DNA of 64,000 nt from Bispira polyomma. Its lineage: Eukaryota. Both the position numbers and the translations under genes were made by a program. The notes beneath the pieces were generated by a model, which ran no database searches, was not told where the DNA came from, and saw nothing but the letters and a program-made list of their open reading frames with translations. The stretch is taken from contig OZ287756.1 of the NCBI GenBank assembly GCA_965649765.1, forward strand, positions 44,330,001 through 44,394,000, given 5' to 3'. Positions 1 to 52,660 of this stretch are shown piece after piece; the stretch's first letter is position 1, and the number at the start of each line of letters is the position of its first letter.

Positions 1-3000
1 CTGCTGCTGGTAACTTTTGCTTGTAAGTTCATCCAAGAATTAGATCTTTGTATAGCTGATACCTGTGATAATGTGGCGCACATGCAGGCTTGTTCCTTAA
101 TACTGAAGCTGTCTGCAAATTGTTCATTTTGATCATCACAAATGTTGAAATTCTGAGACACACAGTATTCAGTGTGTTGCACTAGATTCTCAGATGCATC
201 AATCACTTCTTCATCTTGTTGTTTTGCAAGTGTATCTGCATCTTCGGGTGAATCACTTCTGATGTTCTGCACTTCACCATATACATTGTCATAGATTTCA
301 TAAATGTCACAGTCAATTGTTAGATTGTTGATTGTGCTCTGATCTAGCTGTTGTTGTAATGTTTCATCACATACTGTACTTGTGTCTAGTACAACAGCTT
401 CAAACACACTGTGTGATGTTGCAGTTTCAGCAATCATATCCTTTGTCACTTTTGTATCTTTTCGTGTCTCATTATCAATAGTATTTAAAGCTAGACATAT
501 TGCTATATCCACTAATTCTTTGGCAGTGGAATCTATATGATTTTCTTCCACAGTTACAATATGGTCCTCTCTGCTGCTGGTAACTTTTGCTTGTAAGTTC
601 ATCCAAGAATTAGATCTTTGTATAGCTGATACCTGTGATAATGTGGCGCACATGCAGGCTTGTTCCTTAATACTGAAGCTGTCTGCAAATTGTTCATTTT
701 GATCATCACAAATGTTGAAATTCTGAGACACACAGTATTCAGTGTGTTGCACTAGATTCTCAGATGCATCAATCACTTCTTCATCTTGTTGTTTTGCAAG
801 TGTATCTGCATCTTCGGGTGAATCACTTCTGATGTTCTGCACTTCACCATATACATTGTCATAGATTTCATAAATGTCACAGTCAATTGTTAGATTGTTG
901 ATTGTGCTCTGATCTAGCTGTTGTTGTAATGTTTCTTCACATACTGTACTTGTGTCTAGTACAACAGCTTCAAACACACTGTGTGATGTTGCAGTTTCAG
1001 CAATCATATCCTTTGTCACTTTTGTATCTTTTCGTGTCTCATTATCAATAGTATTTAAAGCTAGACATATTGCTATATCCACTAATTCTTTGGCAGTGGA
1101 ATCTATATGATTTTCTTCCACAGTTACAATATGGTCCTCTCTGCTGCTGGTAACTTTTGCTTGTAAGTTCATCCAAGAATTAGATCTTTGTATAGCTGAT
1201 ACCTGTGATAATGTGGCGCACATGCAGGCTTGTTCCTTAATACTGAAGCTGTCTGCAAATTGTTCATTTTGATCATCACAAATGTTGAAATTCTGAGACA
1301 CACAGTATTCAGTGTGTTGCACTAGATTCTCAGATGCATCAATCACTTCTTCATCTTGTTGTTTTGCAAGTGTATCTGCATCTTCGGGTGAATCACTTCT
1401 GATGTTCTGCACTTCACCATATACATTGTCATAGATTTCATAAATGTCACAGTCAATTGTTAGATTGTTGATTGTGCTCTGATCTAGCTGTTGTTGTAAT
1501 GTTTCATCACATACTGTACTTGTGTCTAGTACTACAGCTTCAAACACACTGTGTGATGTTGCAGTTTCAGCAATCATATCCTTTGTCACTTTTGTATCTT
1601 TTCGTGTCTCATTATCAATAGTATTTAAAGCTAGACATATTGCTATATCCACTAATTCTTTGGCAGTGGAATCTATATGATTTTCTTCCACAGTTACAAT
1701 ATGGTCCTCTCTGCTGCTGGTAACTTTTGCTTGTAAGTTCATCCAAGAATTAGATCTTTGTATAGCTGATACCTGTGATAATGTGGCGCACATGCAGGCT
1801 TGTTCCTTAATACTGAAGCTGTCTGCAAATTGTTCATTTTGATCATCACAAATGTTGAAATTCTGAGACACACAGTATTCAGTGTGTTGCACTAGATTCT
1901 CAGATGCATCAATCACTTCTTCATCTTGTTGTTTTGCAAGTGTATCTGCATCTTCGGGTGAATCACTTCTGATGTTCTGCACTTCACCATATACATTGTC
2001 ATAGATTTCATAAATGTCACAGTCAATTGTTAGATTGTTGATTGTGCTCTGATCTAGCTGTTGTTGTAATGTTTCTTCACATACTGTACTTGTGTCTAGT
2101 ACAACAGCTTCAAACACACTGTGTGATGTTGCAGTTTCAGCAATCATATCCTTTGTCACTTTTGTATCTTTTCGTGTCTCATTATCAATAGTATTTAAAG
2201 CTAGACATATTGCTATATCCACTAATTCTTTGGCAGTGGAATCTATATGATTTTCTTCCACAGTTACAATATGGTCCTCTCTGCTGCTGGTAACTTTTGC
2301 TTGTAAGTTCATCCAAGAATTAGATCTTTGTATAGCTGATACCTGTGATAATGTGGCGCACATGCAGGCTTGTTCCTTAATACTGAAGCTGTCTGCAAAT
2401 TGTTCATTTTGATCATCACAAATGTTGAAATTCTGAGACACACAGTATTCAGTGTGTTGCACTAGATTCTCAGATGCATCAATCACTTCTTCATCTTGTT
2501 GTTTTGCAAGTGTATCTGCATCTTCGGGTGAATCACTTCTGATGTTCTGCACTTCACCATATACATTGTCATAGATTTCATAAATGTCACAGTCAATTGT
2601 TAGATTGTTGATTGTGCTCTGATCTAGCTGTTGTTGTAATGTTTCATCACATACTGTACTTGTGTCTAGTACTACAGCTTCAAACACACTGTGTGATGTT
2701 GCAGTTTCAGCAATCATATCCTTTGTCACTTTTGTATCTTTTCGTGTCTCATTATCAATAGTATTTAAAGCTAGACATATTGCTATATCCACTAATTCTT
2801 TGGCAGTGGAATCTATATGATTTTCTTCCACAGTTACAATATGGTCCTCTCTGCTGCTGGTAACTTTTGCTTGTAAGTTCATCCAAGAATTAGATCTTTG
2901 TATAGCTGATACCTGTGATAATGTGGCGCACATGCAGGCTTGTTCCTTAATACTGAAGCTGTCTGCAAATTGTTCATTTTGATCATCACAAATGTTGAAA

Positions 3001-6000
3001 TTCTGAGACACACAGTATTCAGTGTGTTGCACTAGATTCTCAGATGCATCAATCACTTCTTCATCTTGTTGTTTTGCAAGTGTATCTGCATCTTCGGGTG
3101 AATCACTTCTGATGTTCTGCACTTCACCATATACATTGTCATAGATTTCATAAATGTCACAGTCAATTGTTAGATTGTTGATTGTGCTCTGATCTAGCTG
3201 TTGTTGTAATGTTTCATCACATACTGTACTTGTGTCTAGTACAACAGCTTCAAACACACTGTGTGATGTTGCAGTTTCAGCAATCATATCCTTTGTCACT
3301 TTTGTATCCTTTCGTGTCTCATTATCAATAGTATTTAAAGCTAGACATATTGCTATATCCACTAATTCTTTGGCAGTGGAATCTATATGATTTTCTTCCA
3401 CAGTTACGATATGGTCATCACTGCTGCTGCTGGTAACTTCTGCTTGTAAGTTCATACAAGAATTAGATCTTTGTATAGCTGTATCATCTGATAACGTGGT
3501 GCACATGCATGTTTTGTCCTTAATACTGAAGCTGTCTGCAAATTGTTCATTTTGATCATCACAAATATTGGAATCTTGAGACACACAGTAATCAGTGTGT
3601 TGCACTAGATTCTCAGATGCATCAATTACTTCTTCAACCTGTTGTTTTGCAAGTGCACCTGCATCTTCGGGTGAATCATTTCTGATGTTCTTTGCTTCAC
3701 CAAAAACATTGTCATAGATTTCATAACTGTCACAGTTAACTGTTAGATCGTCGTTTGTGCTCTGATCTAGCTGTCGTAATGTTTCTTCACATACTGTACT
3801 TGTGTCTAGTACTACAGCTTCAAACACACAGTGTGATGTTGCAGTGACAGCAATCATATCCTTTGTCACTTCTGTATCTTTTCGTGTCTCATTATCAATA
3901 GTATTTAAAGCTAGACATATTGCTATATCCACTAATTCTTTGGCAGTGGAATCTATATGATTTTCTTCCACAGTTACAATATGGTCCTCTCTGCTGCTGG
4001 TAAATTCTGCTTGTAAGTTCATCCAAGAAATAGATCTTTGTATAGCTGTATCCTGTGATAATGTGACGCACATGCAGGCTTGTTCCTTAATACTGAAGCT
4101 GTCTGCAAATTGTTCATTTTGATCATCACAAATGTTGAAATTCTGAGACACACAGTATTCAGTGTGTTGCACTAGATTCTCAGATGCATCAATCACTTCT
4201 TCATCTTGTTGTTTTGCAAGTGTATCTGCATCTTCGGGTGAATCACTTCTGATGTTCTGCACTTCACCATATACATTGTCATAGATTTCATAAATGTCAC
4301 AGTCAATTGTTAGATTGTTGATTGTGCTCTGATCTAGCTGTTGTTGTAATGTTTCATCACATACTGTACTTGTGTCTAGTACTACAGCTTCAAACACACT
4401 GTGTGATGTTGCAGTTTCAGCAATCATATCCTTTGTCACTTTTGTATCTTTTCGTGTCTCATTATCAATAGTATTTAAAGCTAGACATATTGCTATATCC
4501 ACTAATTCTTTGGCAGTACAATCTATATGATTTTCTTCCACAGTTACGATATGGTCATCACTGCTGCTGCTGGTAACTTCTGCTTGTAAGTTCATACAAG
4601 AATTAGATCTTTGTATAGCTGTATCATCTGATAACGTGGTGCACATGCATGTTTTGTCCTTAATACTGAAGCTGTCTGCAAATTGTTCATTTTGATCATC
4701 ACAAATGTTGAAATTCTGAGACACACAGTATTCAGTGTGTTGCACTAGATTCTCAGATGCATCAATCACTTCTTCATCTTGTTGTTTTGCAAGTGTATCT
4801 GCATCTTCGGGTGAATCACTTCTGATGTTCTGCACTTCACCATATACATTGTCATAGATTTCATAAATGTCACAGTCAATTGTTAGATTGTTGATTGTGC
4901 TCTGATCTAGCTGTTGTTGTAATGTTTCATCACATACTGTACTTGTGTCTAGTACTACAGCTTCAAACACACTGTGTGATGTTGCAGTTTCAGCAATCAT
5001 ATCCTTTGTCACTTTTGTATCTTTTCGTGTCTCATTATCAATAGTATTTAAAGCTAGACATATTGCTATATCCACTAATTCTTTGGCAGTGGAATCTATA
5101 TGATTTTCTTCCACAGTTACGATATGGTCATCACTGCTGCTGCTGGTAACTTCTGCTTGTAAGTTCATCCAAGAATTAGATCTTTGTATAGCTGTATCCT
5201 GTGATAATGTGACGCACATGCAGGCTTGTTCCTTAATACTGAAGCTGTCTGCAAATTGTTCATTTTGATCATCACAAATGTTGAAATTCTGAGACACACA
5301 GTATTCAGTGTGTTGCACTAGATTCTCAGATGCATCAATCACTTCTTCATCTTGTTGTTTTGCAAGTGTATCTGCATCTTCGGGTGAATCACTTCTGATG
5401 TTCTGCACTTCACCAAAAACATTGTCATAGATTTCATAACTGTCACAGTTAATTGTTAGATCGTCGTTTGTGCTCTGATTTAGTTGTTGTTGTAATGTTT
5501 CTTCACATACCATAAATGTGTCTAGTACTACAGCTTCAAACACACTGTGTGATGTTGCAGTTTCAGCAATCATATTCTTTGTCACTTTTGTATCTTTTCG
5601 TGTCTCATTATCAATAGTATTTAAAGCTAGACATATTGCTATATCCACTAATTCTTTGGCAGTGGAATCTATATGATTGTCTTCCACAGTTACAATATGG
5701 TCCACATTGTTGCTGGTGATAACTTCTGCTTGTAATTTCATAAAAGAATTAGATCTTTGTATAGTTGTATCCTCTGATAATGTGGAGCACATGCAGGTTT
5801 GTTCCTTAATACTGAAGCTGTCTGCAAATTGTTCATTTTGATCATCACAAATGTTGGAATCTTGAGACACACAGTAATCAGTGTGTTGCACTAGATTCTC
5901 AGATGCATCAATCACTTTTTCAAACTGTTGTTTTACAAGTGTATTAGCATCTTTGGGTGAATCACTTCTATTGTTATTTGCTTCACAAAAAACATTGTCA

Positions 6001-6370
6001 TAGATTTCATAACTGTTACAGTTAATTGTTGGATCGCTGATTGTGCTTTGATCTAGCTGTTGTTGAAATGTTTCATCACATACTGTACCTGTGTCTAGTA
6101 CTACAGTTTCATTCACACTGTGTGATGTGGCAATGGCATCAACCATATCCTCTGTCCCTTCTGTGTCCTTTCTTGGTTCATTAATACTATTTAATGCTAG
6201 ACACGTTGCTATGTCTACTAATTCTTTGGCAATGGAATCTATATGATTTTCCTCCGCAATTACAACATAGTCCTCTTCCATAGATCTTTGTAGTGCTGTA
6301 CCCTGTGATAATGTGCTGCACATGCAAGTTTCTTCTTTTATGCTGAAGCTGTCTGCAAATTCTTTGTTGT
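1..6370 (-). repeat. Coding tandem array, 570-bp (190-aa) unit, about 11 copies in the window, continuing off the left edge
   Basis: ctgctgctggtaact recurs at 1, 571, 1141, 1711, 2281, 2851, about 3424, 3991, about 4564 and about 5137. The indels seen are 3 bp. Unit: REDHIVTVEENHIDSTAKELVDIAICLALNTIDNETRKDTKVTKDMIAETATSHSVFEAVVLDTSTVCDETLQQQLDQSTINNLTIDCDIYEIYDNVYGEVQNIRSDSPEDADTLAKQQDEEVIDASENLVQHTEYCVSQNFNICDDQNEQFADSFSIKEQACMCATLSQVSAIQRSNSWMNLQAKVTSS. Copies near 5500-6370 are more diverged. Confidence 0.97.
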
Positions 6371-8089
6371 GGCCATTATAAATTTTGCAAGTATCTGTAT
6401 GATATTTTTTTACCTCCTTGCACAGTGTTATATTTAGATTGCAACTTTCATATGTGTTACTGTAACGTTTATACAGTACATCCTCACAATTCGTTATATC
6501 AGAAACAACTACATTGTCACTAGCATCATGCAGATGTTTGCAGTAATCAGTTGTTTTGATTGGAATTGAAGATTCATCATTTGCTGTTTCCCTTGTTGTT
6601 ACTTGAGGTTTGGGCTGCGTTAAATCAGTATTATTGAGAACATTTTTTAGGAAAACATGGTCACATAGTTCTTTACTGTAGCAGTGTGTCGTTATCTCTT
6701 CTTTCTGAACTTGGCAAAAACTTGGCATTTCATCTTTGTCATCTACCTGAAGAGTGTCTTCACTGGTGACAAAGCATGAATCATCAATTGACTGACAACC
6801 ATTGAACTTTTCCTTGTTTGAAAGACGATCTATAAAAAACATGCCATTATCTGCTAGTGCTTCATCAAGTACAGAATAATATACTGCTTTTACTTCCATT
6901 GTGAAAAATGTAACTTCGAAAACGACATTTTCGTGCTTTGCAATATAGTCAGTGTTTTTATCTGTAATGTTTCCAATTTCTCCGGTTCCTTGTTCTTCAC
7001 CAGTCAGACATCCAGTGTTTTCTTCAGATTTTATTTGTTTAACATTTCTTTTCTTCTGTTCAAAATGGTTGATGTGCTTATCGTCCAGCAAGTCTGCAAC
7101 TTGCACAGAAATGTGATCACAATGATTAATGTATGATTCCATGGAAACAGTAGGTGAGTCGCCTCTGTCCTCTTCTAGATCATTTTCAGAATGTGGTGTA
7201 ACAATTTCTCTGGGAGTGCCATCTTCTTCGAAATCTTCAATGTGTTTGTCTTCATCTTCTGCAGCATCAGCAGGTGAATCACCATCCAGTATTAGTGTTT
7301 CATCATTACCACATCTACCAACTGGGACAGGTGCTTCATCCGCCATAGAATCTTCACCCAGGTAATTTTCATGTGGGATTTCATCTGGTTCAGATAAATC
7401 CACATCTTCCATTTCTCTGTCATCCCTTGGAAGATTATCTGTGTCTTTGCTTTCACCATTCTGTACATGTTTGACATGCTCAAGACACTGTTCTAAGTGA
7501 TTGTCTGGTTCAATTGCAATTTCTCTTGCTGCATATACATCACATATAATAGTAATATCCTTATCTGTACAAGTAACCTCAACAGAAGCATCTGTTTCAT
7601 TTTGATTCATTTCTATTTCTTTTGTAGGTGTTACCTTAGTGGAATCAAATTTGTCACTAATTAAATTATCTAATGCATGTACTTTGGTGAAAGTGTGATC
7701 TTCTGTGATTTGTTCATCCAAATCTTTATCACATGATAATTCATCCAATAGATGTGAATAGATAGTTTGTCCAGTGTCTTGGTCCTGTGGGGATGTGATC
7801 TCAGGTGTAGTTAGTATCTTGACTTCGACATCACAAGAAGCTGCATGATTGTAGGTGAATGACATGACATCGGTATACACAATGTCAGTGTCTTGTTTCT
7901 CTGGTTCCTCAACATCAGAATTATTTATATTATCATCCGTTTCCTCATGATCATGTCCCATTGTCTCGATGATGGTAAACTCATGAAGAAATCTAAATAA
8001 ATCTATCAGAGGAGTGCAGGCGATTTCCTTCATTGTAACATAAATGTGGTTTTCCATTTCCTCAGTTCCTTTACGTTCTCCACAGAATG
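1..8089 (-). CDS. Second giant coding exon (3'-incomplete) of the giant repeat protein; unique acidic linker followed by 190-aa repeats with an AKAP-like helix
   Basis: Acceptor ttattacacAG|CATTCTGT, with the exon starting at 8089. The phase-1 join to the upstream exon gives ...MDSIH-A-FCGERKGTEEMENHIY... Codon starts at 8087, 6962 and 2 share one frame, and manual translation found no stop. The ORF track lacks this ORF, consistent with no stop before the window edge. Confidence 0.88.
7150..7454 (-). repeat. Solitary diverged partial copy of the 402-bp repeat inside the second giant exon
   Basis: Translates in frame to ESKDTDNLPRDDREMEDVDLSEPDEIPHENYLGEDSMADEAPVPVGRCGNDETLILDGDSPADAAEDEDKHIEDFEEDGTPREIVTPHSENDLEEDR, collinear with the 134-aa unit. 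Confidence 0.93.
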
Positions 8090-8636
8090 CTGTGTAATAA
8101 TTTAAACCAAGAACCACACTCAAAATATGTATTGGCCTAAATAAATCAGTCGACAAAATAGTGTGTATACACACACAACACAAATATAATAATTGATGCA
8201 TACTATGACAGACATTTTTATCTATAACATGACTAATTCATACCAAAATTTGAGTAACACAGTTTTCATTTTACATTGATTCAGGTAAGTAAACGATTAG
8301 AATCACAGTAATTTATAGACATATCAGTACAACAAAACATTTCATATTATAAATGTTTTCAACTAAATAATGGTTGTTTCTTTTTATATGTTGATAATTA
8401 TCATCATTTTTTCAGTATGCAGTACTCTTACAATAACAGTAACAAAAGGTTTGAACAGAAACTTTTCAAATATAGTTTGATCTATATGTAAAATATGTAG
8501 CGGTTATTACAACTGCCCAGTAAAACTGATGCACATGTTCTTAAGATCACATGAAGGTCAAGTAAAATTATTAACGTATACAAATATATGACAATATATT
8601 CAATTACATTTATACCATGCCAAAAATAATACTGAC

Positions 8637-11600
8637 CATGTATTGAATCCATTCCTTGAGTTTCCTCTTCTACGAAATCTTCCGAGTGTTTGTCTTCATC
8701 TTCCGAATCATCAGCCGGTGAGTCACCATCCAGTATTAGTGTTTCATCATCAACACATGTACCAACTGGGACAGGCGCTTCATCCTCCTTAGAATCTTCA
8801 GTCAGGTCATCTTCATGTGGGGCTTCATCTGGTTCTGACGATTCAACATCTTCCAATTTATTTTCATCCCTTGGAAGATTATCTGTGTCTTTGCTTTCTT
8901 CAGCCATAGTTTCTGTAGGTTCAGTAATTTCCTCTTCTGGTTCTTTGTCATTCTCTTCATCCACACAAGTACCATCTGGAACAGGAACACCAGTGTCATC
9001 TTCTTGTATTCTGTCCCCTTCTAGATCCTTTTCAGACTGTGGTGTAACAGTTTCTCTTGGAGTGCCACCTTCTTCGACATCTTCAGTGTGTTTGTTTTCA
9101 TCTTCTGCTGCATCAGTATGTGAGTCGCCATCCAGTATTGGTGTTTCATCATCAACACATGTACCAACTAGGACAGGCGCTTCTTCCTCCTTAGAATCTT
9201 CAGTCAGGTCATCTTCATGTGGTGCTTCATCTGGTTTGGATGATTCAACATCTTCCAATTCACTTTCATCCATTGGAAGATTATCTGTGTCTTTGCTTTC
9301 TTCATCTATAGTTTCTGTAGGTTCAGTAATTTCCTCTTCTGGTTCTTTGTCATTCTCTTCATCCACACAAGTACCGTCTGGAACAGGAACACCAGTGTCA
9401 TCTTCTTGTATTCTGTCCTCTTCTCGATCCTTTTCAGACTGTGGTGTAACAGTTTCTCTTGGAGTGTCACCTTCTTCGACATCTTCAGTGTGTTTGTGTT
9501 CATCTTCTGCATCATCAGTAGGTGCGTCACCATCCAGTATTGGTGTTTCATCATCAACACATGTACCAACTGGGACAGGCGCTTCTTCCTCCTTAGAATC
9601 TTCGACATCTTCAGTGTGTTTGTGTTCATCTTCTGAATCATCAGCCGGTGAGTCACCATCCAGTATTAGTGTTTCATCATCAACACATGTACCAACTGGG
9701 ACAGGCGCTTCATCCTCCTTAGAATCTTCAGTCAGGTCATCTTCATGTGGGGCTTCATCTGGTTCTGACGATTCAACATCTTCCAATTTATTTTCATCCC
9801 TTGGAAGATTATCTGTGTCTTTGCTTTCTTCAGCCATAGTTTCTGTAGGTTCAGTAATTTCCTCTTCTGGTTCTTTGTCATTCTCTTCATCCACACAAGT
9901 ACCGTCTGGAACAGGAACACCAGTGTCATCTTCTTGTATTCTGTCCCCTTCTAGATCCTTTTCAGACTGTGGTGTAACAGTTTCTCTTGGAGTGCCACCT
10001 TCTTCGACATCTTCAGTGTGTTTGTTTTCATCTTCTGCTGCATCAGTATGTGAGTCGCCATCCAGTATTGGTGTTTCATCATCAACACATGTACCAACTA
10101 GGACAGGCGCTTCTTCCTCCTTAGAATCTTCAGTCAGGTCATCTTCATGTGGTGCTTCATCTGGTTTGGATGATTCAACATCTTCCAATTCACTTTCATC
10201 CATTGGAAGATTATCTGTGTCTTTGCTTTCTTCATCTATAGTTTCTGTAGGTTCAGTAATTTCCTCTTCTGGTTCTTTGTCATTCTCTTCATCCACACAA
10301 GTACCGTCTGGAACAGGAACACCAGTGTCATCTTCTTGTATTCTGTCCTCTTCTCGATCCTTTTCAGACTGTGGTGTAACAGTTTCTCTTGGAGTGTCAC
10401 CTTCTTCGACATCTTCAGTGTGTTTGTGTTCATCTTCTGCATCATCAGTAGGTGCGTCACCATCCAGTATTGGTGTTTCATCATTGACACATGTACCAAC
10501 TGGGACAGGCGCTTCTTCCTCCTTAGAATCTTCGACATCTTCAGTGTGTTTGTGTTCATCTTCTGAATCATCAGCCGGTGAGTCACCATCCAGTATTAGT
10601 GTTTCATCATCAACACATGTACCAACTGGGACAGGCGCTTCATCCTCCTTAGAATCTTCAGTCAGGTCATCTTCATGTGGGACTTCATCTGGTTTGGATG
10701 ATTCAACATCTTCCAATTCACATTCATTCCTTGGAAGATTATCTGTGTCTTTGGTTTCTTCGTCCAGCGTTTCTGTAGGTTCAGTAATTTCCTCTTCTGG
10801 TTCTTTGTCATTCTCTTCATCCACACAAATACCATCTGGAACAGGAACACAAGTGTCATCTTCTTGTATTCTGTCCTCTTCTAGATCCTTTTCAGACTGT
10901 GGTGTAACAGTTTCTCTTGGAGTGTCACCTTCTTCGACATCTTCAGTGTGTTTGTGTTCATCTTCTGCAGCATCAGTAGGTGAGTCGCCATCCAGTATTG
11001 GTGTTTCATCATCAACACATGTACCAACTGGGACAGGTGCTTCATCCTCCTTAGAAACTTCTGTCAGGTCTTCTTCATGTGGTGCTTCATCTGGTTTGGA
11101 TGATTCAACATCTTCCAATTCACTTTCATCCATTGGAAGATTATCTGTGTCTTTGCTTTCTTCATCGATAGTTTCTGTAGGTTCAGTAATTTTCTCTTCT
11201 GGTTCTTTGTCATTCTCTTCATCCACACAAGTACTGTCTGGAACAGGAACACCAGTGTCATCTTCTTGTATTCTGTCCTCTTCTCGATCCTTTTCAGACT
11301 GTGGTGTAACAGTTTCTCTTGGAGTGTCACCTTCTTTGACATCTTCAGTGTGTTTGTGTTCATCTTCTGCATCATCAGTAGGTGCGTCACCATCCAGTAT
11401 TGGTGTTTCATCATCAACACATGTACCAACTGGGACAGGCGCTTCTTCCTCCTTAGAATCTTCAGTCAGGTCATCTTCTTGTGTGGCTTCATCTGGTTTG
11501 GATGATTCAGCATCCTCCAATTCACTTTCATCCATTGGAAGATTATCTGTGTCTTTGCTTTCTTCATCCATAGTTTCTGTAGGTTCAGTAATTTTCTCTT

Positions 11601-14600
11601 CTGGTTCTTTGTCATTCTCTTCATCCACACAAGTACCGTCTGGAACAGGAACTCCAGTGTCATCTTCTTGTATTCTGTCCTCTTGTAGATCCTTTTCAGA
11701 CTGTGGTGTAACAGTTTCTCTTGGAGTGTCACCTTCGTTGACATCTTCAGTGTGTTTGTTTTCATCTTCTGCAGCATCAGTAGGTGAGTCGCCATCCAGT
11801 ATTGGTGTTTCATCATCAACACATGTACCAACTGGGACAGGCGCTTCATCCTCCTTAGAATCTTCAGTCAGGTCATCTCCATGTGGGGCTTCATTTGGTT
11901 TGGATGATTCAACATCTTCCAATTCACTTTCATCCATTGGAAGATTATCTGTGTCTTTGCTTTCTTCATCCATAGTTTCTGTAGGTTCAGTAATTTCCTC
12001 TTCTGGTTCTTTGTCATTCTCTTCATCCACACAAGTACCATCTGGAACAGGAACACCAGTGTCATCTTCTTGTATTCTGTCCTCTTCTAGATCCTTTTCA
12101 GACTGTGGTGTAACAGTTTCTCTTGGAGTGTCACCTTCTTCGACATCTTCAGTGTGTTTGTGTTCATCTTCTGCAGCATCAGTAGGTGAGTCGCCATCCA
12201 GTATTGGTGTTTCATCATCAACACATGTACCAACTGGGACAGGTGCTTCATCCTCCTTAGAAACTTCTGTCAGGTCTTCTTCATGTGGTGCTTCATCTGG
12301 TTTGGATGATTCAACATCTTCCAATTCACTTTCATCCATTGGAAGATTATCTGTGTCTTTGCTTTCTTCATCGATAGTTTCTGTAGGTTCAGTAATTTTC
12401 TCTTCTGGTTCTTTGTCATTCTCTTCATCCACACAAGTACTGTCTGGAACAGGAACACCAGTGTCATCTTCTTGTATTCTGTCCTCTTCTCGATCCTTTT
12501 CAGACTGTGGTGTAACAGTTTCTCTTGGAGTGTCACCTTCTTTGACATCTTCAGTGTGTTTGTGTTCATCTTCTGCATCATCAGTAGGTGCGTCACCATC
12601 CAGTATTGGTATTTCATCATCAACACATGTACCAACTGGGACAGGCGCTTCTTCCTCCTTAGAATCTTCAGTCAGGTCATCTTCTTGTGTGGCTTCATCT
12701 GGTTTGGATGATTCAGCATCCTCCAATTCACTTTCATCCATTGGAAGATTATCTGTGTCTTTGCTTTCTTCATCCATAGTTTCTGTAGGTTCAGTAATTT
12801 TCTCTTCTGGTTCTTTGTCATTCTCTTCATCCACACAAGTACCGTCTGGAACAGGAACTCCAGTGTCATCTTCTTGTATTCTGTCCTCTTGTAGATCCTT
12901 TTCAGACTGTGGTGTAACAGTTTCTCTTGGAGTGTCACCTTCTTCGACATCTTCAGTGTGTTTGTTTTCATCTTCTGCAGCATCAGTAGGTGAGTCGCCA
13001 TCCAGTATTGGTGTTTCATCATCAACACATGTACCAACTGGGACAGGTGCTTCATCCTCCTTAGAAACTTCTGTCAGGTCTTCTTCATGTGGTGCTTCAT
13101 CTGGTTTGGATGATTCAACATCTTCCAATTCACTTTCATCCATTGGAAGATTATCTGTGTCTTTGCTTTCTTCATCTATAGTTTCTGTAGGTTCAGTAAT
13201 TTCCTCTTCTGGTTCTTTGTCATTCTCTTCATCCACACAAGTACCGTCTGGAACAGGAACACCAGTGTCATCTTCTTGTATTCTGTCCTCTTCTCGATCC
13301 TTTTCAGACTGTGGTGTAACAGTTTCTCTTGGAGTGTCACCTTCTTCGACATCTTCAGTGTGTTTGTGTTCATCTTCTGCATCATCAGTAGGTGCGTCAC
13401 CATCCAGTATTGGTGTTTCATCATCAACACATGTACCAACTGGGACAGGCGCTTCTTCCTCCTTAGAATCTTCGACATCTTCAGTGTGTTTGTGTTCATC
13501 TTCTGAATCATCAGCCGGTGAGTCACCATCCAGTATTAGTGTTTCATCATCAACACATGTACCAACTGGGACAGGCGCTTCATCCTCCTTAGAATCTTCA
13601 GTCAGGTCATCTTCATGTGGGGCTTCATCTGGTTTGGATGATTCAACATCTTCCAATTCACATTCATTCCTTGGAAGATTATCTGTGTCTTTGGTTTCTT
13701 CGTCCAGCGTTTCTGTAGGTTCAGTAATTTCCTCTTCTGGTTCTTTGTCATTCTCTTCATCCACACAAATACCGTCTGGAACAGGAACACCAGTGTCATC
13801 TTCTTGTATTCTGTCCTCTTCTAGATCCTTTTCAGACTGTGGTGTAACAGTTTCTCTTGGAGTGCCACCTTCTTCGACATCTTCAGTGTGTTTGTTTTCA
13901 TCTTCTACAGCATCAGTATGTGAGTTGCCATCCAGTATTGGTGTTTCATTATCAACACATGTACCAACTGGGACAGGCGCTTCTTCCTCCTTAGAATCTT
14001 CAGTCAGGTCATCTTCTTGTGTGGCTTCATCTGGTTTGGATGATTCAGCATCCTCCAATTCACTTTCATCCATTGGAAGATTATCTGTGTCTCTGCTTTC
14101 TTCATCCATAGTTTCTGTAGGTTCAGTAATTTCCTCTTCTGGTTCTTTGTCATTCTCTTCATCCACACAAGTACCGTCTGGAACAGGAACACCAGTGTCA
14201 TCTTCTTGTATTCTGTCCCCTTCTAGATCCTTTTCAGACTGTGGTGTAACAGTTTCTCTTGTAGTGTCACCTTCTTCGACATCTTCAGTGTGTTTATGTT
14301 CATCTTCTGCATCATCAGTAGGTGCGTTACCATCCAGTATTGGTGTTTCATCATCAACACATGTACCAACTGGGACAGGCGCTTCTTCCTCCTTAGAATC
14401 TTCAGTCAGGTCATCTTCTTGTGTGGCTTCATCTGGTTTGGCTGATTCAGCATCCTCCAATTCACTTCCATCCATTGGAAGATTATCTGTGTCTCTGCTT
14501 TCTTCATCCATAGTTTCTGTAGGTTCAGTAATTTCCTCTTCTGGTTCTTTGTCATTCTCTTCATCCACACAAGTACCGTCTGGAACAGGAACACCAGTGT

Positions 14601-17600
14601 CATCTTCTTGTATTCTGTCCGCTTCTAGATCCTTTTCAGACTGTGGTGTAACAGTTTCTCTTGTAGTGTCACCTTCTTCGACATCTTCAGTGTGTTTGTT
14701 TTCATCTTCTGCAGCATCAGTAGGTGCGTCGCCATCCAGTATTGGTGTTTCATCATCAACACATGTACCAACTAGGACAGGCGCTTCTTCCTCCTTAGAA
14801 TCTTCTGTCAGGTCATCTTCATGTGGTGCTTCATCTGGTTTGGATGATTCAACATCTTCCAATTCACTTTCATCCATTGGAACATTATCTGTGTCTTTGC
14901 TTTCTTCATCCATAGTTTCTGTAGGTTCAGTAATTTTCTCTTCTGGTTCTTTGTCATTCTCTTCATCCACACAAGTACCGTCTGGAACAGGAACACCAGT
15001 GTCATCTTCTTGTATTCTGTCCCCTTCTAGATCCTTTTCAGACTGTGGTGTAACAGTTTCTCTTGGAGTGTCACCTTCTTCGACATCTTCAGTGTGTTTG
15101 TTTTCATCTTCTGCAGCATCAGTAGGTGCGTCGCCATCCAGTATTGGTGTTTCATCATCAACACATGTACCAACTGGGACAGGTGCTTCATCCTCCTTAG
15201 AATCTTCTGTCAGGTCATCTTCTTGTGGTGCTTCATCTGGTTTGGATGATTCAACATCTTCCAATTCACTTTCATCCATTGGAAGATTATCTGTGTCTTT
15301 GCTTTCTTCATCCATAGTTTCTGTAGGTTCAGTAATTTTCTCTTCTGGTTCTTTGTCATTCTCTTCATCCACACAAGTACCGTCTGGAACAGGAACACCC
15401 GTGTCATCTTCTTGTATTCTGTCCTCTTCTCGATCCTTTTCAGACTGTGGTGTAACAGTTTCTCTTGGAGTGTCACCTTCTTCGACATCTTCAGTGTGTT
15501 TATGTTCATCTTCTGCAGCATCAGTAGGTGCGTCACCATCCAGTATTGGTGTTTCATCATCAACACATGTACCAACTGGGAAAGGCACTTCTTCCTCCTT
15601 AGAATCTTCAGTCAGGTCATCTCTATGTGGGGCTTTATTTGGTTTGGATGATTCAACATCTTCCAATTCACTTTCATCCATTGGAAGATTATCTGTGTCT
15701 TTGCTTTCTTCATCCATAGTTTCTGTAGGTTCAGTAATTTTCTCTTCTGGTTCTTTGTCATTCTCTTCATCCACACAAGTACCATCTGGAACAGGAACAC
15801 CAGTGTCATCTTCTTGTATTCTGTCCTCTTCTAGATCCTTTTCAGACTGTGGTGTAACAGTTTCTGTTGGAGTGTCACCTTCTTTGACATCTTCAGTGTG
15901 TTTGTTTTCATCTTCTGCAGCATCAGTAGGTGCGTCGCCATCCAGTATTGGTGTTTCATCATCAACACATGTACCAACTGGGACAGGTGCTTCATCCTCC
16001 TTAGAATCTTCTGTCAGGTCATCTTCTTGTGGTGCTTCATCTGGTTTGGATGATTCAACATCTTCCAATTCACTTTCATCCATTGGAAGATTATCTGTGT
16101 CTTTGCTTTCTTCATCCATAGTTTCTGTAGGTTCAGTAATTTTCTCTTCTGGTTCTTTGTCATTCTCTTCATCCACACAAGTACCGTCTGGAACAGGAAC
16201 ACCAGTGTCATCTTCTTGTATTCTGTCCCCTTCTAGATCCTTTTCAGACTGTGGTGTAACAGTTTCTCTTGTAGTGTCACCTTCTTCGACATCTTCAGTG
16301 TGTTTGTTTTCATCTTCTGCAGCATCAGTAGGTGCGTCGCCATCCAGTATTGGTGTTTCATCATCAACACATGTACCAACTGGGACAGGTGCTTCATCCT
16401 CCTTAGAATCTTCTGTCAGGTCTTCTTCATGTGGTGCTTCATCTGGTTTGGATGATTCAACATCTTCCAATTCACTTTCATCCATTGGAAGATTATCTGT
16501 GTCTTTGCTTTCTTCATCCATAGTTTCTGTAGGTTCAGTAATTTTCTCTTCTGGTTCTTTGTCATTCTCTTCATCCACACAAGTACCGTCTGGAACAGGA
16601 ACACCAGTGTCATCTTCTTGTATTCTGTCCTCTTCTCGATCCTTTTCAGACTGTGGTGTAACAGTTTCTCTTGGAGTGTCACCTTCTTCGACATCTTCAG
16701 TGTGTTTATGTTCATCTTCTGCATCATCAGTAGGTGCGTCACCATCCAGTATTGGTGTTTCATCATCAACACATGTACCAACTGGGACAGGCGCTTCTTC
16801 CTCCTTAGAATCTTCAGTCAGGTCATCTTCTTGTGTGGCTTCATCTGGTTTGGATGATTCAGCATCCTCCAATTCACTTTCATCCATTGGAAGATTATCT
16901 GTGTCTCTGCTTTCTTCATCCATAGTTTCTGTAGGTTCAGTAATTTCCTCTTCTGGTTCTTTGTCATTCTCTTCATCCACACAAGTACCGTCTGGAACAG
17001 GAACACCAGTGTCATCTTCTTGTATTCTGTCCCCTTCTAGATCCTTTTCAGACTGTGGTGTAACAGTTTCTCTTGTAGTGTCACCTTCTTCGACATCTTC
17101 AGTGTGTTTGTTTTCATCTTCTGCAGCATCAGTAGGTGCGTCGCCATCCAGTATTGGTGTTTCATCATCAACACATGTACCAACTGGGACAGGTGCTTCA
17201 TCCTCCTTAGAATCTTCTGTCAGGTCTTCTTCATGTGGTGCTTCATCTGGTTTGGATGATTCAACATCTTCCAATTCACTTTCATCCATTGGAAGATTAT
17301 CTGTGTCTTTGCTTTCTTCATCCATAGTTTCTGTAGGTTCAGTAATTTTCTCTTCTGGTTCTTTGTCATTCTCTTCATCCACACAAGTACCGTCTGGAAC
17401 AGGAACACCAGTGTCATCTTCTTGTATTCTGTCCTCTTCTCGATCCTTTTCAGACTGTGGTGTAACAGTTTCTCTTGGAGTGTCACCTTCTTCGACATCT
17501 TCAGTGTGTTTATGTTCATCTTCTGCATCATCAGTAGGTGCGTCACCATCCAGTATTGGTGTTTCATCATCAACACATGTACCAACTGGGACAGGCGCTT

Positions 17601-20600
17601 CTTCCTCCTTAGAATCTTCAGTCAGGTCATCTTCTTGTGTGGCTTCATCTGGTTTGGATGATTCAGCATCCTCCAATTCACTTCCATCCATTGGAAGATT
17701 ATCTGTGTCTCTGCTTTCTTCATCCATAGTTTCTGTAGGTTCAGTAATTTCCTCTTCTGGTTCTTTGTCATTCTCTTCATCCACACAAGTACCGTCTGGA
17801 ACAGGAACACCAGTGTCATCTTCTTGTATTCTGTCCCCTTCTAGATCCTTTTCAGACTGTGGTGTAACAGTTTCTCTTGTAGTGTCACCTTCTTCGACAT
17901 CTTCAGTGTGTTTGTTTTCATCTTCTGCAGCATCAGTAGGTGCGTCGCCATCCAGTATTGGTGTTTCATCATCAACACATGTACCAACTAGGACAGGCGC
18001 TTCTTCCTCCTTAGAATCTTCTGTCAGGTCATCTTCATGTGGTGCTTCATCTGGTTTGGATGATTCAACATCTTCCAATTCACTTTCATCCATTGGAACA
18101 TTATCTGTGTCTTTGCTTTCTTCATCCATAGTTTCTGTAGGTTCAGTAATTTTCTCTTCTGGTTCTTTGTCATTCTCTTCATCCACACAAGTACCGTCTG
18201 GAACAGGAACACCAGTGTCATCTTCTTGTATTCTGTCCCCTTCTAGATCCTTTTCAGACTGTGGTGTAACAGTTTCTCTTGGAGCGTCACCTTCTTCGAC
18301 ATCTTCAGTGTGTTTGTTTTCATCTTCTGCAGCACCAGTAGGTGCGTCGCCATCCAGTATTGGTGTTTCATCATCAACACATGTACCAACTAGGACAGGC
18401 GCTTCTTCCTCCTTAGAATCTTCTGTCAGGTCATCTTCATGTGGTGCTTCATCTGGTTTGGATGATTCAACATCTTCCAATTCACTTTCATCCATTGGAA
18501 CATTATCTGTGTCTTTGCTTTCTTCATCCATAGTTTCTGTAGGTTCAGTAATTTTCTCTTCTGGTTCTTTGTCATTCTCTTCATCCACACAAGTACCGTC
18601 TGGAACAGGAACACCAGTGTCATCTTCTTGTATTCTGTCCCCTTCTAGATCCTTTTCAGACTGTGGTGTAACAGTTTCTCTTGGAGCGTCACCTTCTTCG
18701 ACATCTTCAGTGTGTTTGTTTTCATCTTCTGCAGCACCAGTAGGTGCGTCGCCATCCAGTATTGGTGTTTCATCATCAACACATGTACCAACTGGGACAG
18801 GTGCTTCATCCTCCTTAGAATCTTCAGTCAGGTCTTCTTCATGTGGTGCTTCATCTGGTTTGGATGATTCAACATCTTCCAATTCACTTTCATCCATTGG
18901 AAGATTATCTGTGTCTTTGCTTTCTTCATCCATAGTTTCTGTAGGTTCAGTAATTTTCTCTTCTGGTTCTTTGTCATTCTCTTCATCCACACAAGTACCG
19001 TCTGGAACAGGAACACCAGTGTCATCTTCTTGTATTCTGTCCTCTTCTCGATCCTTTTCAGACTGTGGTGTAACAGTTTCTCTTGGAGTGTCACCTTCTT
19101 CGACATCTTCAGTGTGTTTATGTTCATCTTCTGCATCATCAGTAGGTGCGTCACCATCCAGTATTGGTGTTTCATCATCAACACATGTACCAACTGGGAC
19201 AGGCGCTTCTTCCTCCTTAGAATCTTCAGTCAGGTCATCTTCTTGTGTGGCTTCATCTGGTTTGGATGATTCAGCATCCTCCAATTCACTTTCATCCATT
19301 GGAAGATTATCTGTGTCTCTGCTTTCTTCATCCATAGTTTCTGTAGGTTCAGTAATTTCCTCTTCTGGTTCTTTGTCATTCTCTTCATCCACACAAGTAC
19401 CGTCTGGAACAGGAACACCAGTGTCATCTTCTTGTATTCTGTCCCCTTCTAGATCCTTTTCAGACTGTGGTGTAACAGTTTCTCTTGTAGTGTCACCTTC
19501 TTCGACATCTTCAGTGTGTTTGTTTTCATCTTCTGCAGCATCAGTAGGTGCGTCGCCATCCAGTATTGGTGTTTCATCATCAACACATGTACCAACTGGG
19601 ACAGGTGCTTCATCCTCCTTAGAATCTTCTGTCAGGTCTTCTTCATGTGGTGCTTCATCTGGTTTGGATGATTCAACATCTTCCAATTCACTTTCATCCA
19701 TTGGAAGATTATCTGTGTCTTTGCTTTCTTCATCCATAGTTTCTGTAGGTTCAGTAATTTTCTCTTCTGGTTCTTTGTCATTCTCTTCATCCACACAAGT
19801 ACCGTCTGGAACAGGAACACCAGTGTCATCTTCTTGTATTCTGTCCTCTTCTCGATCCTTTTCAGACTGTGGTGTAACAGTTTCTCTTGGAGTGTCACCT
19901 TCTTCGACATCTTCAGTGTGTTTATGTTCATCTTCTGCATCATCAGTAGGTGCGTCACCATCCAGTATTGGTGTTTCATCATCAACACATGTACCAACTG
20001 GGACAGGCGCTTCATCCTCCTTAGAATCTTCAGTCAGGTCATCTTCTTGTGTGGCTTCATCTGGTTTGGATGATTCAGCATCCTCCAATTCACTTCCATC
20101 CATTGGAAGATTATCTGTGTCTCTGCTTTCTTCATCCATAGTTTCTGTAGGTTCAGTAATTTCCTCTTCTGGTTCTTTGTCATTCTCTTCATCCACACAA
20201 GTACCGTCTGGAACAGGAACACCAGTGTCATCTTCTTGTATTCTGTCCCCTTCTAGATCCTTTTCAGACTGTGGTGTAACAGTTTCTCTTGTAGTGTCAC
20301 CTTCTTCGACATCTTCAGTGTGTTTGTTTTCATCTTCTGCAGCATCAGTAGGTGCGTCGCCATCCAGTATTGGTGTTTCATCATCAACACATGTACCAAC
20401 TGGGACAGGTGCTTCATCCTCCTTAGAATCTTCTGTCAGGTCTTCTTCATGTGGTGCTTCATCTGGTTTGGATGATTCAACATCTTCCAATTCACTTTCA
20501 TCCATTGGAAGATTATCTGTGTCTTTGCTTTCTTCATCCATAGTTTCTGTAGGTTCAGTAATTTTCTCTTCTGGTTCTTTGTCATTCTCTTCATCCACAC

Positions 20601-23600
20601 AAGTACCGTCTGGAACAGGAACACCAGTGTCATCTTCTTGTATTCTGTCCTCTTCTAGATCCTTTTCAGACTGTGGTGTAACAGTTTCTCTTGGAGTGTC
20701 ACCTTCTTCGACATCTTCAGTGTGTTTATGTTCATCTTCTGCATCATCAGTAGGTGCGTCACCATCCAGTATTGGTGTTTCATCATCAACACATGTACCA
20801 ACTGGGACAGGCGCTTCTTCCTCCTTAGAATCTTCAGTCAGGTCATCTTCTTGTGTGGCTTCATCTGGTTTGGATGATTCAGCATCCTCCAATTCACTTC
20901 CATCCATTGGAAGATTATCTGTGTCTCTGCTTTCTTCATCCATAGTTTCTGTAGGTTCAGTAATTTCCTCTTCTGGTTCTTTGTCATTCTCTTCATCCAC
21001 ACAAGTACCGTCTGGAACAGGAACACCAGTGTCATCTTCTTGTATTCTGTCCCCTTCTAGATCCTTTTCAGACTGTGGTGTAACAGTTTCTCTTGTAGTG
21101 TCACCTTCTTCGACATCTTCAGTGTGTTTGTTTTCATCTTCTGCAGCATCAGTAGGTGCGTCGCCATCCAGTATTGGTGTTTCATCATCAACACATGTAC
21201 CAACTAGGACAGGCGCTTCTTCCTCCTTAGAATCTTCTGTCAGGTCATCTTCATGTGGTGCTTCATCTGGTTTGGATGATTCAACATCTTCCAATTCACT
21301 TTCATCCATTGGAACATTATCTGTGTCTTTGCTTTCTTCATCCATAGTTTCTGTAGGTTCAGTAATTTTCTCTTCTGGTTCTTTGTCATTCTCTTCATCC
21401 ACACAAGTACCGTCTGGAACAGGAACACCAGTGTCATCTTCTTGTATTCTGTCCCCTTCTAGATCCTTTTCAGACTGTGGTGTAACAGTTTCTCTTGGAG
21501 CGTCACCTTCTTCGACATCTTCAGTGTGTTTGTTTTCATCTTCTGCAGCACCAGTAGGTGCGTCGCCATCCAGTATTGGTGTTTCATCATCAACACATGT
21601 ACCAACTGGGACAGGTGCTTCATCCTCCTTAGAATCTTCAGTCAGGTCTTCTTCATGTGGTGCTTCATCTGGTTTGGATGATTCAACATCTTCCAATTCA
21701 CTTTCATCCATTGGAAGATTATCTGTGTCTTTGCTTTCTTCATCCATAGTTTCTGTAGGTTCAGTAATTTTCTCTTCTGGTTCTTTGTCATTCTCTTCAT
21801 CCACACAAGTACCGTCTGGAACAGGAACACCAGTGTCATCTTCTTGTATTCTGTCCTCTTCTCGATCCTTTTCAGACTGTGGTGTAACAGTTTCTCTTGG
21901 AGTGTCACCTTCTTCGACATCTTCAGTGTGTTTATGTTCATCTTCTGCATCATCAGTAGGTGCGTCACCATCCAGTATTGGTGTTTCATCATCAACACAT
22001 GTACCAACTGGGACAGGCGCTTCTTCCTCCTTAGAATCTTCAGTCAGGTCATCTTCTTGTGTGGCTTCATCTGGTTTGGATGATTCAGCATCCTCCAATT
22101 CACTTTCATCCATTGGAAGATTATCTGTGTCTCTGCTTTCTTCATCCATAGTTTCTGTAGGTTCAGTAATTTCCTCTTCTGGTTCTTTGTCATTCTCTTC
22201 ATCCACACAAGTACCGTCTGGAACAGGAACACCAGTGTCATCTTCTTGTATTCTGTCCCCTTCTAGATCCTTTTCAGACTGTGGTGTAACAGTTTCTCTT
22301 GTAGTGTCACCTTCTTCGACATCTTCAGTGTGTTTGTTTTCATCTTCTGCAGCATCAGTAGGTGCGTCGCCATCCAGTATTGGTGTTTCATCATCAACAC
22401 ATGTACCAACTGGGACAGGTGCTTCATCCTCCTTAGAATCTTCTGTCAGGTCTTCTTCATGTGGTGCTTCATCTGGTTTGGATGATTCAACATCTTCCAA
22501 TTCACTTTCATCCATTGGAAGATTATCTGTGTCTTTGCTTTCTTCATCCATAGTTTCTGTAGGTTCAGTAATTTTCTCTTCTGGTTCTTTGTCATTCTCT
22601 TCATCCACACAAGTACCGTCTGGAACAGGAACACCAGTGTCATCTTCTTGTATTCTGTCCTCTTCTCGATCCTTTTCAGACTGTGGTGTAACAGTTTCTC
22701 TTGGAGTGTCACCTTCTTCGACATCTTCAGTGTGTTTATGTTCATCTTCTGCATCATCAGTAGGTGCGTCACCATCCAGTATTGGTGTTTCATCATCAAC
22801 ACATGTACCAACTGGGACAGGCGCTTCTTCCTCCTTAGAATCTTCAGTCAGGTCATCTTCTTGTGTGGCTTCATCTGGTTTGGATGATTCAGCATCCTCC
22901 AATTCACTTCCATCCATTGGAAGATTATCTGTGTCTCTGCTTTCTTCATCCATAGTTTCTGTAGGTTCAGTAATTTCCTCTTCTGGTTCTTTGTCATTCT
23001 CTTCATCCACACAAGTACCGTCTGGAACAGGAACACCAGTGTCATCTTCTTGTATTCTGTCCCCTTCTAGATCCTTTTCAGACTGTGGTGTAACAGTTTC
23101 TCTTGTAGTGTCACCTTCTTCGACATCTTCAGTGTGTTTGTTTTCATCTTCTGCAGCATCAGTAGGTGCGTCGCCATCCAGTATTGGTGTTTCATCATCA
23201 ACACATGTACCAACTAGGACAGGCGCTTCTTCCTCCTTAGAATCTTCTGTCAGGTCATCTTCATGTGGTGCTTCATCTGGTTTGGATGATTCAACATCTT
23301 CCAATTCACTTTCATCCATTGGAACATTATCTGTGTCTTTGCTTTCTTCATCCATAGTTTCTGTAGGTTCAGTAATTTTCTCTTCTGGTTCTTTGTCATT
23401 CTCTTCATCCACACAAGTACCGTCTGGAACAGGAACACCAGTGTCATCTTCTTGTATTCTGTCCCCTTCTAGATCCTTTTCAGACTGTGGTGTAACAGTT
23501 TCTCTTGGAGCGTCACCTTCTTCGACATCTTCAGTGTGTTTGTTTTCATCTTCTGCAGCACCAGTAGGTGCGTCGCCATCCAGTATTGGTGTTTCATCAT

Positions 23601-44600: not shown

Positions 44601-45092
44601 ATTCCAATTCACTTTCATCCCTTGAAAGATTATCTGTGTCTTTGCTTTCTTTATCCATAGTTTCTGTAAGTTCAGTAATTTCCTCTTCTGGTTCTTTGTC
44701 ATTCTCTTCATCCACACAAGTACCGTCTGCAACAGGAACACCAGTGTCATCTTGTATTCTGTCCCCTTCTAGATCCTTTTCAGACTGTGGTGTAACAATT
44801 TCTCTTGTAGTGTCATCTTCTTCAACATCTTCAGTGTGTTTGTCGTCATCTTCTGCAGCATCAGCAGATGAGTAGCCATCCAGTATTGGTGTTTCATCAT
44901 CAACACATGTACCAACCAAGACAGGTGCTTCGTCCTCTTCAGAATATTTACTCTGGTCATTTTCATGTGAGGCTTCCTCTGGTTTGGATAACTCAACATC
45001 TTCGAACATTTCGTGAATACTATTATCATCACTTATATTTTGAACCGGCGATGAGTAACCTGAACTTGATGAATTTTTTCTTGAATAGGCAT
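8637..45092 (-). CDS. Giant 36,456-nt coding exon (12,152 codons) encoding a D/E-rich, probably disordered repeat region
   Basis: Lies within the 12,209-aa ORF 8482..45111. Acceptor ttttaattacAG|ATGCC (AG at 45094-45093) and donor CATG|GTCAGT (GT at 8636-8635). Both ends are phase 1 and the length is divisible by 3. The ORF sequence outside these sites is AT-rich and intron-like. Confidence 0.88.
8670..45010 (-). repeat. Coding tandem array, 402-bp (134-aa) unit, about 90 copies, with higher-order structure
   Basis: Shadow ORFs recur every 402 bp from 13602 to 44154. There are three 126-bp internal duplications (9601-9726, 10531-10656, 13471-13596) and 399-bp units at the 5' end. Representative unit: EDDTGVPVPDGTCVDEENDKEPEEEITEPTETMDEESKDTDNLPMDESELEDVESSKPDEAPHEDDLTEDSKEEEAPVPVGTCVDDETPILDGDAPTDAAEDENKHTEDVEEGDTPRETVTPQSEKDLEGDRIQ. 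Confidence 0.98.
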
Positions 45093-45960: not shown

Positions 45961-46080
45961 CTTTAGATACTGAAGGAGTTCTAGGGCTTCCTGTTTGTCC
46001 AATATACGGTAGAAATGGTGTTCCAGGGTTGCTGTAGCAATCTCCTTCACCTCTATTACTGCCTGATCGTGGTCTTTGAT
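45961..46080 (-). CDS. Internal 120-nt exon of the giant gene: (D)QRPRSGSNRGEGDCYSNPGTPFLPYIGQTGSPRTPSVSK
   Basis: Acceptor ttcctgtAG| and donor AAAG|GTATTG, phase 1-1, open, and in frame with both neighbours. GC-richer than its flanks. Confidence 0.85.
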
Positions 46081-49092: not shown

Positions 49093-49206
49093 CTGTAGTT
49101 AGTGGCGAGGATGTCCTGGGACTGTATGAGCTCTCTATGTGGGGTAGTGTAGGAGTGCATGATCTGGTTCTTGGGCTGGTTTCGTCTGAATACCTCGGAC
49201 TGGAAC
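49093..49206 (-). CDS. Internal 114-nt exon of the giant gene: (C)SSPRYSDETSPRTRSCTPTLPHIESSYSPRTSSPLTT
   Basis: Acceptor ttctgttacAG|GT and donor ACAG|GTACTA, phase 1-1, open. S/P/R-rich like the adjacent exons. Confidence 0.85.
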
Positions 49207-52269: not shown

Positions 52270-52660
52270 ACCTAATATAGGGACAAAATATTAATAATGA
52301 TTCACAACTTTACATGAGAAACCATGACTGACTAATTTTAGAAAGTTTCACGCCTGATTTTATTACGAAATAATATACCTCAATATTATTAAACATTACA
52401 CCTAATATAGGGAAAATAAATGAGGGCAAACTATAAATATAAACCACAACTTTACTTGTAAAACCATGACTGACTGATCTTGGAATGGCTTTGTGAGACT
52501 GGCGCCTGATACTTTAATAAGCACATAATATAACTCAATATTACCAAATAATATACCCTCAATATTATCGAATAATATACCTTAATATTACTAAATATTA
52601 CACCTAATATAGGGAAAATATTACGGCCAAAACATAAACAAATAAAGCACAACTTTACAT
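52270..52660. repeat. Three diverged tandem copies of an intron-start segment
   Basis: cctaatataggg.aaaata recurs near 52272, 52401 and 52603, and cacaactttac recurs at 52303, 52445 and 52648. Confidence 0.75.

Follow-up and report, generated by a model that had tools for sequence, protein, structure and literature searches.

[quoted passage not shown] Binding to the PKA R subunits needs five helical turns (PMC12203939), and a repeated pattern of hydrophobic pairs has been described for the helices that interact with D/D domains (PMC3494852). AKAPs selective for RI present in addition an FA or YA dipeptide at helix positions 1-2 (PMC12083921). Here we analysed a stretch of 64,000 nucleotides from Bispira polyomma (the window, G000:C9:44330001-44394000 in an assembly of 1.035 Gb and 75 contigs), in which an initial annotation had proposed a tandem array of AKAP-type amphipathic helices. 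On the sequence, this array belongs to a real giant gene with a predicted product of about 16,100 aa, and we lean, with considerable reservation, towards the view that the exon carrying it (exon B) codes for a multivalent scaffold docking D/D-domain dimers.

The helix array

The helices identified are the following:

489..6245, minus strand: AKAP-like helices, 11 copies within the window (by translation; cross-species identity 77%, dN/dS 0.06)
L004:9919-9969, 9436-9486 and 8866-8916, minus strand: three off-window repeat helices, just past the left edge
L004:8290-8340, minus strand: diverged solitary helix, after a unique stretch beyond the repeat copies

Translation of the minus strand at the coordinates given in the initial annotation (489-6245) returned the 11 proposed 17-mers, including the two variants, at a spacing of 190-191 aa. 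The frame that encodes them is the only one open throughout the exon, with 0 stops vs 121-414 in the other five. The array had also been expected to run on beyond the window; it does continue to the left but is soon finite, since three more repeat copies and the diverged solitary helix bring the total to 15 (14 repeat copies plus one). A helix-profile search of the whole assembly found no other helix loci. Good retention of the helix in the most diverged copy had also been noted, and the helix is indeed found there, but this is weak evidence because the copies are homogenised and a core Ile has become Thr in that copy. We have therefore discarded retention within the species as an argument, the real evidence being that obtained across species.

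Gene model and exon organisation

The gene model is based on splice signals and conservation, and was searched exon by exon. The features recognised upstream of the C-terminal exons are:

G000:C9:44338089 down to 44327760 (in-window 1..8089), minus strand: giant exon B, whole 10,330 nt, 3,442 full codons
8090..8636, minus strand: intron between the giant exons, 547 nt, GT-AG, phase 1
8637..45092, minus strand: giant exon A, 36,456 nt, 12,152 codons, phase 1-1
45961..46080, minus strand: small predicted coding exon N3, 120 nt, phase 1-1 (splice signals and open frame)
49093..49206, minus strand: coding exon N2, 114 nt, phase 1-1, Ser/Pro/Thr-rich (88% amino-acid identity with the relative)
52659..53022, minus strand: first coding exon N1, 121 codons, ATG at 53022 (P0004 75% identical)
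53746..53793, minus strand: conserved 48-nt block upstream of N1 (85% identity, same relative place in the relative)

Exon B extends 2240 bases past the window edge, with its acceptor AG at 8090 (phase 1) and its donor GT at L004:7759. It opens with some 615 unique residues, followed by the 14 units, each of about 190 aa, and by a unique linker that contains the solitary helix; it closes with the first 37 aa of an aminotransferase-like domain of class V, whose N-terminus is read in the same frame. At the 5' end, the first 56 codons of N1 are 93% identical across species with saturated synonymous sites, and the 48-nt block is possibly a 5' untranslated exon or a promoter element, judging by its position and conservation. 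Pfam scans of the 5' exons returned no significant family; for N1, Pfam gave no match and the ESM Atlas none that was usable. Our search of the literature found no paper on this gene.

Splicing of the predicted exons into one mRNA is suggested by their splice signals. Three sequencing runs hold the sequence, all of them DNA, in which the introns are evenly covered and show no splice joints; this, together with the fact that the 5' exons are all of phase 1-1, such that exon A could be skipped, would suit an array that is untranslated satellite DNA, or an assembly artefact, within an intron of an aminotransferase-like gene. We consider this extremely improbable, as one open frame of 10.3 kb continues without a break into the start of the aminotransferase domain, and as the relative shares the gene layout, its unit being built in another way and its divergence being biased towards synonymous changes. 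The depth of short reads also supports the repeats: for one repeat piece, which the assembly holds as six identical copies, the depth of the short-read contig was 6.5-7.8 times that of the unique flank in the three DNA runs, a fit indicating that the array is not an artefact of assembly.

The giant exons had brought to mind a giant ankyrin, a candidate that we rejected, since ankyrin, ZU5 and death domains are all absent from the flanking exons and the protein ends in an aminotransferase-like domain. Other elements were noted in the surroundings. Upstream of the first exon there is a 61-nt inverted repeat (window 54066-54126 and 54500-54560) whose arms are 79% complementary and separated by 373 nt, and which probably represents a small DNA transposon. 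A 10-bp tandem repeat of 37 copies occupies window positions 60525-60897. Two tandem genes of glycosyltransferase family 92 lie at L014:4386-5462 and L015:4453-5529 (minus strand), and a nearly intact LINE with endonuclease and reverse transcriptase (one stop) lies on the plus strand at L004:441-3380, in an intron of the aminotransferase-like region.

An orthologue in a second species

Using the end of exon B as query against 1.84 billion protein representatives, we obtained a single protein match, P0003, from another animal assembly (ENA ERZ22147071); relatives beyond this one other species were not found in that set, and the ESM Atlas had no usable match to the same query. The contig of the relative shows the same order, namely N1, N2, a frame of 11,077 aa, a short gap, an exon B frame of 2,918 aa and the aminotransferase-like exons, the gap between the two long frames falling at the place of intron 8090..8636. 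Its exon B unit is built differently and measures 249 aa, with 9 repeat helices (14 here) that together with the solitary one make 10. The silent-site distance between both species is large (pS ~0.64 in the aminotransferase exons) and yet exons E2 and E4-E7 of the C-terminal domain are 79-94% identical with dN/dS of 0.02-0.08, which places the gene under strong selection at the protein level.

Selection on the helix and on two further motifs

The initial annotation had asked whether orthologues conserve the helix more than the rest of the unit, and this they do: the helix is 77% identical between species vs 28% for the remainder. No other window of 18 residues in the unit is as well conserved; the permutation test gives a P of ~2.5e-4, which has to be read knowing that columns are not independent and that the spacer alignment is uncertain. 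The codons of the repeat helix differ between species by 9 synonymous and 5 non-synonymous changes, giving a dN/dS of ~0.06 with synonymous sites near saturation. Comparing four helix lineages (repeat and solitary, in two species), A6, K7, L9, D11, A13, A17 and L18 are invariant, one copy excepted; positions 2, 8, 10, 14 and 16 have undergone mostly conservative changes, and positions 1, 3-5, 12 and 15 vary. Substitutions between lineages lie mostly off the hydrophobic face.

Two other motifs of the unit are constrained about as much as the helix, FADSFSIKE with 72% identity over 18 residues and SVFEA with 80% over 15 residues. In the units of exon B (window 1-6400, minus strand) we observed fuller forms of these motifs, FADSFSIKE..CxCxTL and TxSVFEAxxLDT, the first of them being present two or three times in each unit of the relative. 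At its core, FADSF conforms to FxDxF, a pattern of AP-2 ear ligands. From its sequence, then, the exon B unit is a cassette of three motifs set on a fast-evolving spacer.

Since two further motifs are similarly constrained, the helix may belong to a composite site for another partner. The broader alternative is that the helix is real and selected while its partner is no D/D domain, be it another protein with a groove, the two unit motifs against which the helix would pack, the helix itself through self-association, or a membrane on which it would lie. We regard this as unlikely, albeit worthy of serious attention. The co-conservation of three motifs per unit speaks for it, as does the occurrence by chance of such amphipathic helices in folded proteins, and in the membrane variant the conserved Cys of the repeat helix could be acylated or oxidised. 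On the other side, the spacing between the three motifs differs between species, the solitary helix is devoid of Cys, and the polar-face residues K7 and D11, neither of which a generic membrane helix needs, are invariant in the four lineages and match AKAP-IS.

Likeness of the helix to AKAP peptides

The alignment with AKAP-IS proposed in the initial annotation proved accurate, being gap-free with 7-8 of the 17 residues identical, and 8 in the case of the repeat helix (AKAP-IS as printed in PMC4526808); A6, K7, D11, A13 and A17 of the helix are also residues of AKAP-IS. We scored the helices with profiles made of comparison peptides taken from the same source (PMC4526808). With the profile of five peptides, 125 of 5.14 million composition-shuffled windows reached the score of the repeat helix (~0.005 per unit) and only 2 reached that of the solitary helix. 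When Ht31 and AKB-RII (D-AKAP2-derived) were used alone, however, 0.6% of shuffled windows equalled the repeat helix, so that the significance of the profile score rests on designed peptides of the AKAP-IS kind. Under the same profiles the scores were 15.7-23.5 for the repeat helix and 21-29 for the solitary helix, as compared with 23.5-39.5 for known peptides left out of the profile, which puts the repeat helix below the known binders or at their lower edge. Scores of 25-28 for the solitary helices lie within the range of the left-out peptides. In both exon B and P0003 no other window outscores the helices, and exon A contains none approaching them.

The weak score of the repeat helix against natural-derived peptides favours a partner other than a D/D domain, and the fact that the solitary helix scores like known binders argues in the opposite direction. 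The same difference might mean that the solitary helix is the sole working D/D site, the repeats being weak or dead duplicates that give length to a one-site anchor. Indeed the solitary helix clearly outscores the repeat helix in both species, and copy number differs between them (14 vs 9). This is a very improbable reading considering that dN/dS is 0.06 in the repeat helix vs 0.44 in the solitary one, values that come from only 18 codons each.

In its general features the helix resembles the known anchoring peptides. It spans five turns and its hydrophobic moment is 0.32-0.51 (0.39-0.53 in the known peptides), with five hydrophobic pairs at positions 1-2, 5-6, 9-10, 13-14 and 17-18, of which His1 and Thr5 are degenerate in the repeat copy, where Thr occupies a core position. 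Positions 1-2 read HI, NI, VV or AL; lacking the FA or YA dipeptide, the helix would be of RII or dual type and not selective for RI.

Database comparisons were negative. The scan with Pfam RII_binding_1 (PF10522) suggested by the initial annotation gave no match at E up to 10, a result that adds to the case for a partner outside the D/D domains but is a soft one, given that HMMER filters drop weak short matches. Over the whole genome PF10522 yielded two marginal matches elsewhere and none at the locus, and the other Pfam AKAP families matched neither units nor helices. In the PDB, searches with the helix, the helix profile and the solitary helix of the relative found no AKAP chains, and the best match of the helix profile was a helix of a folded acetyltransferase (E 0.048). 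Because of the failed RII_binding_1 test, and the likeness being at the level of sequence, we do not assign the protein to the AKAPs.

Predicted structure and candidate partners

At low confidence, AlphaFold models the repeat unit as disordered (mean pLDDT 32) with a helix at residues 49-74, the sole part above 50, and the solitary helix likewise as a free helix. These models suggest that a five-turn amphipathic helix would form in the units. The unique linker that leads from the solitary helix to the aminotransferase domain (L004:8000-8200, minus strand) has further conserved blocks, two of them modelled as helices.

The genome encodes D/D domains of both RI and RII type and, by our reading of the sequences, also a putative SP17-like one. 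Two RII-type D/D domains (L031 and L032) seem to be present besides one of RI type, and the PDB comparison covered L031. No residue separates the hydrophobic-pair helices of PKA binders from those of non-PKA D/D binders (PMC3494852), hence the sequence of the helix cannot tell PKA from other D/D partners.

The C-terminal aminotransferase-like domain

The remainder of the C-terminal domain is encoded beyond the window:

G000:C9 ~44326880 down to 44316510 (L004, L005), minus strand: exons E2-E8 of the class-V aminotransferase-like domain, seven exons, ending in a stop

These exons lie within 13.5 kb downstream of exon B (window -2130 to -13490). Exon E5 matches PF00266 with 25.2 bits (cut-off 21.5), PDB matches of the domain are C-S lyases including Egt2, and exons E1-E8 correspond exon for exon to those of a neighbouring intact paralogue, aminotransferase exon 3 being present and conserved. 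Mapping the active-site positions through the motifs of the paralogue, and not through structure, we found that in both species the pyridine-binding Asp has been replaced by Asn, the stacking Tyr has been lost and the phosphate-binding His has become Ser, whereas the Schiff-base Lys is kept. The pyridine-binding Asp is essential in EgtE, where D180A abolishes activity (PMC10805701). The residues of an active C-S lyase of the Egt2/EgtE type are thus incomplete in both species, which probably makes the domain a pseudo-enzyme, one that would have been retained for the way it folds or dimerises.

The intact paralogue is Egt2/L-cysteine-desulfhydrase-like and lies ~40 kb upstream of the first exon (L012:9601 to L014:356, minus strand); the contig of the relative has it as well. 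More aminotransferase paralogues are found on the same chromosome (L017-L018), one of them with a changed Asp-Gly-Ala-His motif.

The motif array of exon A

Exon A codes for about 90 acidic units of 134 aa with a net charge of -0.33 per residue. A motif of the type PV-x-[VD]-GTCVD occurs in 176 copies and holds 176 of the 186 cysteines of the exon. In the relative, the called frame of 11,077 aa is made of units of 254 aa that keep the motif, with 36 copies in the 3,225 residues examined. The end of the motif, G-T-x-V-D, resembles a non-canonical LC8 site, and like the multivalent LC8 clients KANK1 and ASCIZ the exon codes for a disordered region with many short conserved motifs. The anchor residues observed in LC8 sites are, however, Gln (or Asn, Met, Ser, Gly), with Cys unlisted (PMC12057147), and Cys is what the exon A motif has at that place. 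The dimensions differ too, there being about 15 motif copies in KANK1 vs 176 in exon A, and short linkers in KANK1 and ASCIZ vs a spacing of 60-70 residues here. An array of LC8 type is accordingly offered as a lead only, and the cysteine motifs form a possible array of either LC8 or metal/redox type.

A model for the function of the array

The interpretation put forward in the initial annotation, of a giant scaffold anchoring many PKA holoenzymes, stands in part. The coding exon, the purifying selection, the conservation of the helix, the modelled helix in a disordered unit and the presence of RI- and RII-type D/D domains in the genome are in its favour, but the Pfam scan was negative and the repeat helix did not stand out when compared with Ht31 and the D-AKAP2-derived peptide only. 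We propose that each unit would be a disordered acidic spacer bearing three selected short motifs, one of them an AKAP-type five-turn amphipathic helix. The helix would dock a D/D-domain dimer, either of PKA RII or of a non-PKA protein of the RIIa/DPY-30 clan such as the SP17-like protein of this genome, and a single chain might carry up to 15 D/D dimers in a row, the individual repeat sites perhaps being weak and dependent on avidity. The C-terminal domain of aminotransferase fold, probably noncatalytic, may serve as an anchor or a dimeriser, and on the scaffold reading the protein would work like an AKAP. D/D binding, its partner, the role of valency and the loss of catalysis are all steps that we infer from sequence. 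As to the partner, PKA itself is a plausible but doubtful candidate, and it is quite unlikely that another D/D protein takes its place.

If this model holds, a single disordered protein of ~1.8 MDa would hold 10-15 PKA holoenzymes, or D/D dimers of another kind, in a row at a fixed distance from one another, a statement we can make but tentatively. Copy number would then be tuned by tandem expansion, with a second array of ~176 motifs and a catalytically dead PLP-enzyme domain alongside. An invertebrate array of 10 to 15 sites would, if true, amount to a natural experiment on valency and spacing in a cAMP signalling domain or PKA condensate. Even with a partner other than PKA, the gene would code for one of the largest predicted proteins, with two independent selected motif arrays and a conserved cap that is probably a pseudo-enzyme.

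Comparison with known systems

With the C-S lyases of the Egt2/EgtE type (PF00266) the C-terminal domain shares the family match, the position of the Schiff-base Lys motif and a C-terminal Arg motif; unlike in the ordinary enzymes of this type, it is here the end of a chain in which some 15,700 residues of disordered repeats precede it. RSP3 and other DDIPs show that amphipathic helices with the same hydrophobic-pair pattern also scaffold RIIa and DPY-30 proteins other than PKA (PMC3494852), but RSP3 is a small axonemal protein whose two helices differ from each other, in contrast to the giant array described here. Among the anchoring peptides compared (the helix of AKAP7/AKAP18 and the designed AKAP-IS, SuperAKAP-IS and RIAD), AKAP7 has an epitope whose core S-K-x-L-V-x-x-A is shared by the last repeat copy (PMC3508976); the resemblance to all of them is nevertheless only a convergent likeness of short motifs.

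The closest described systems are AKAP220 (AKAP11) and SKIP/SPHKAP, to which we detected no homology of the giant protein. They are large and carry more than one PKA-anchoring helix, as we propose from sequence for the present gene, but they are of vertebrate origin, have two described helices each and show no tandem units. The 15 helices found here and the 10 of the relative would therefore exceed the two per multi-site AKAP that we found described in the literature.
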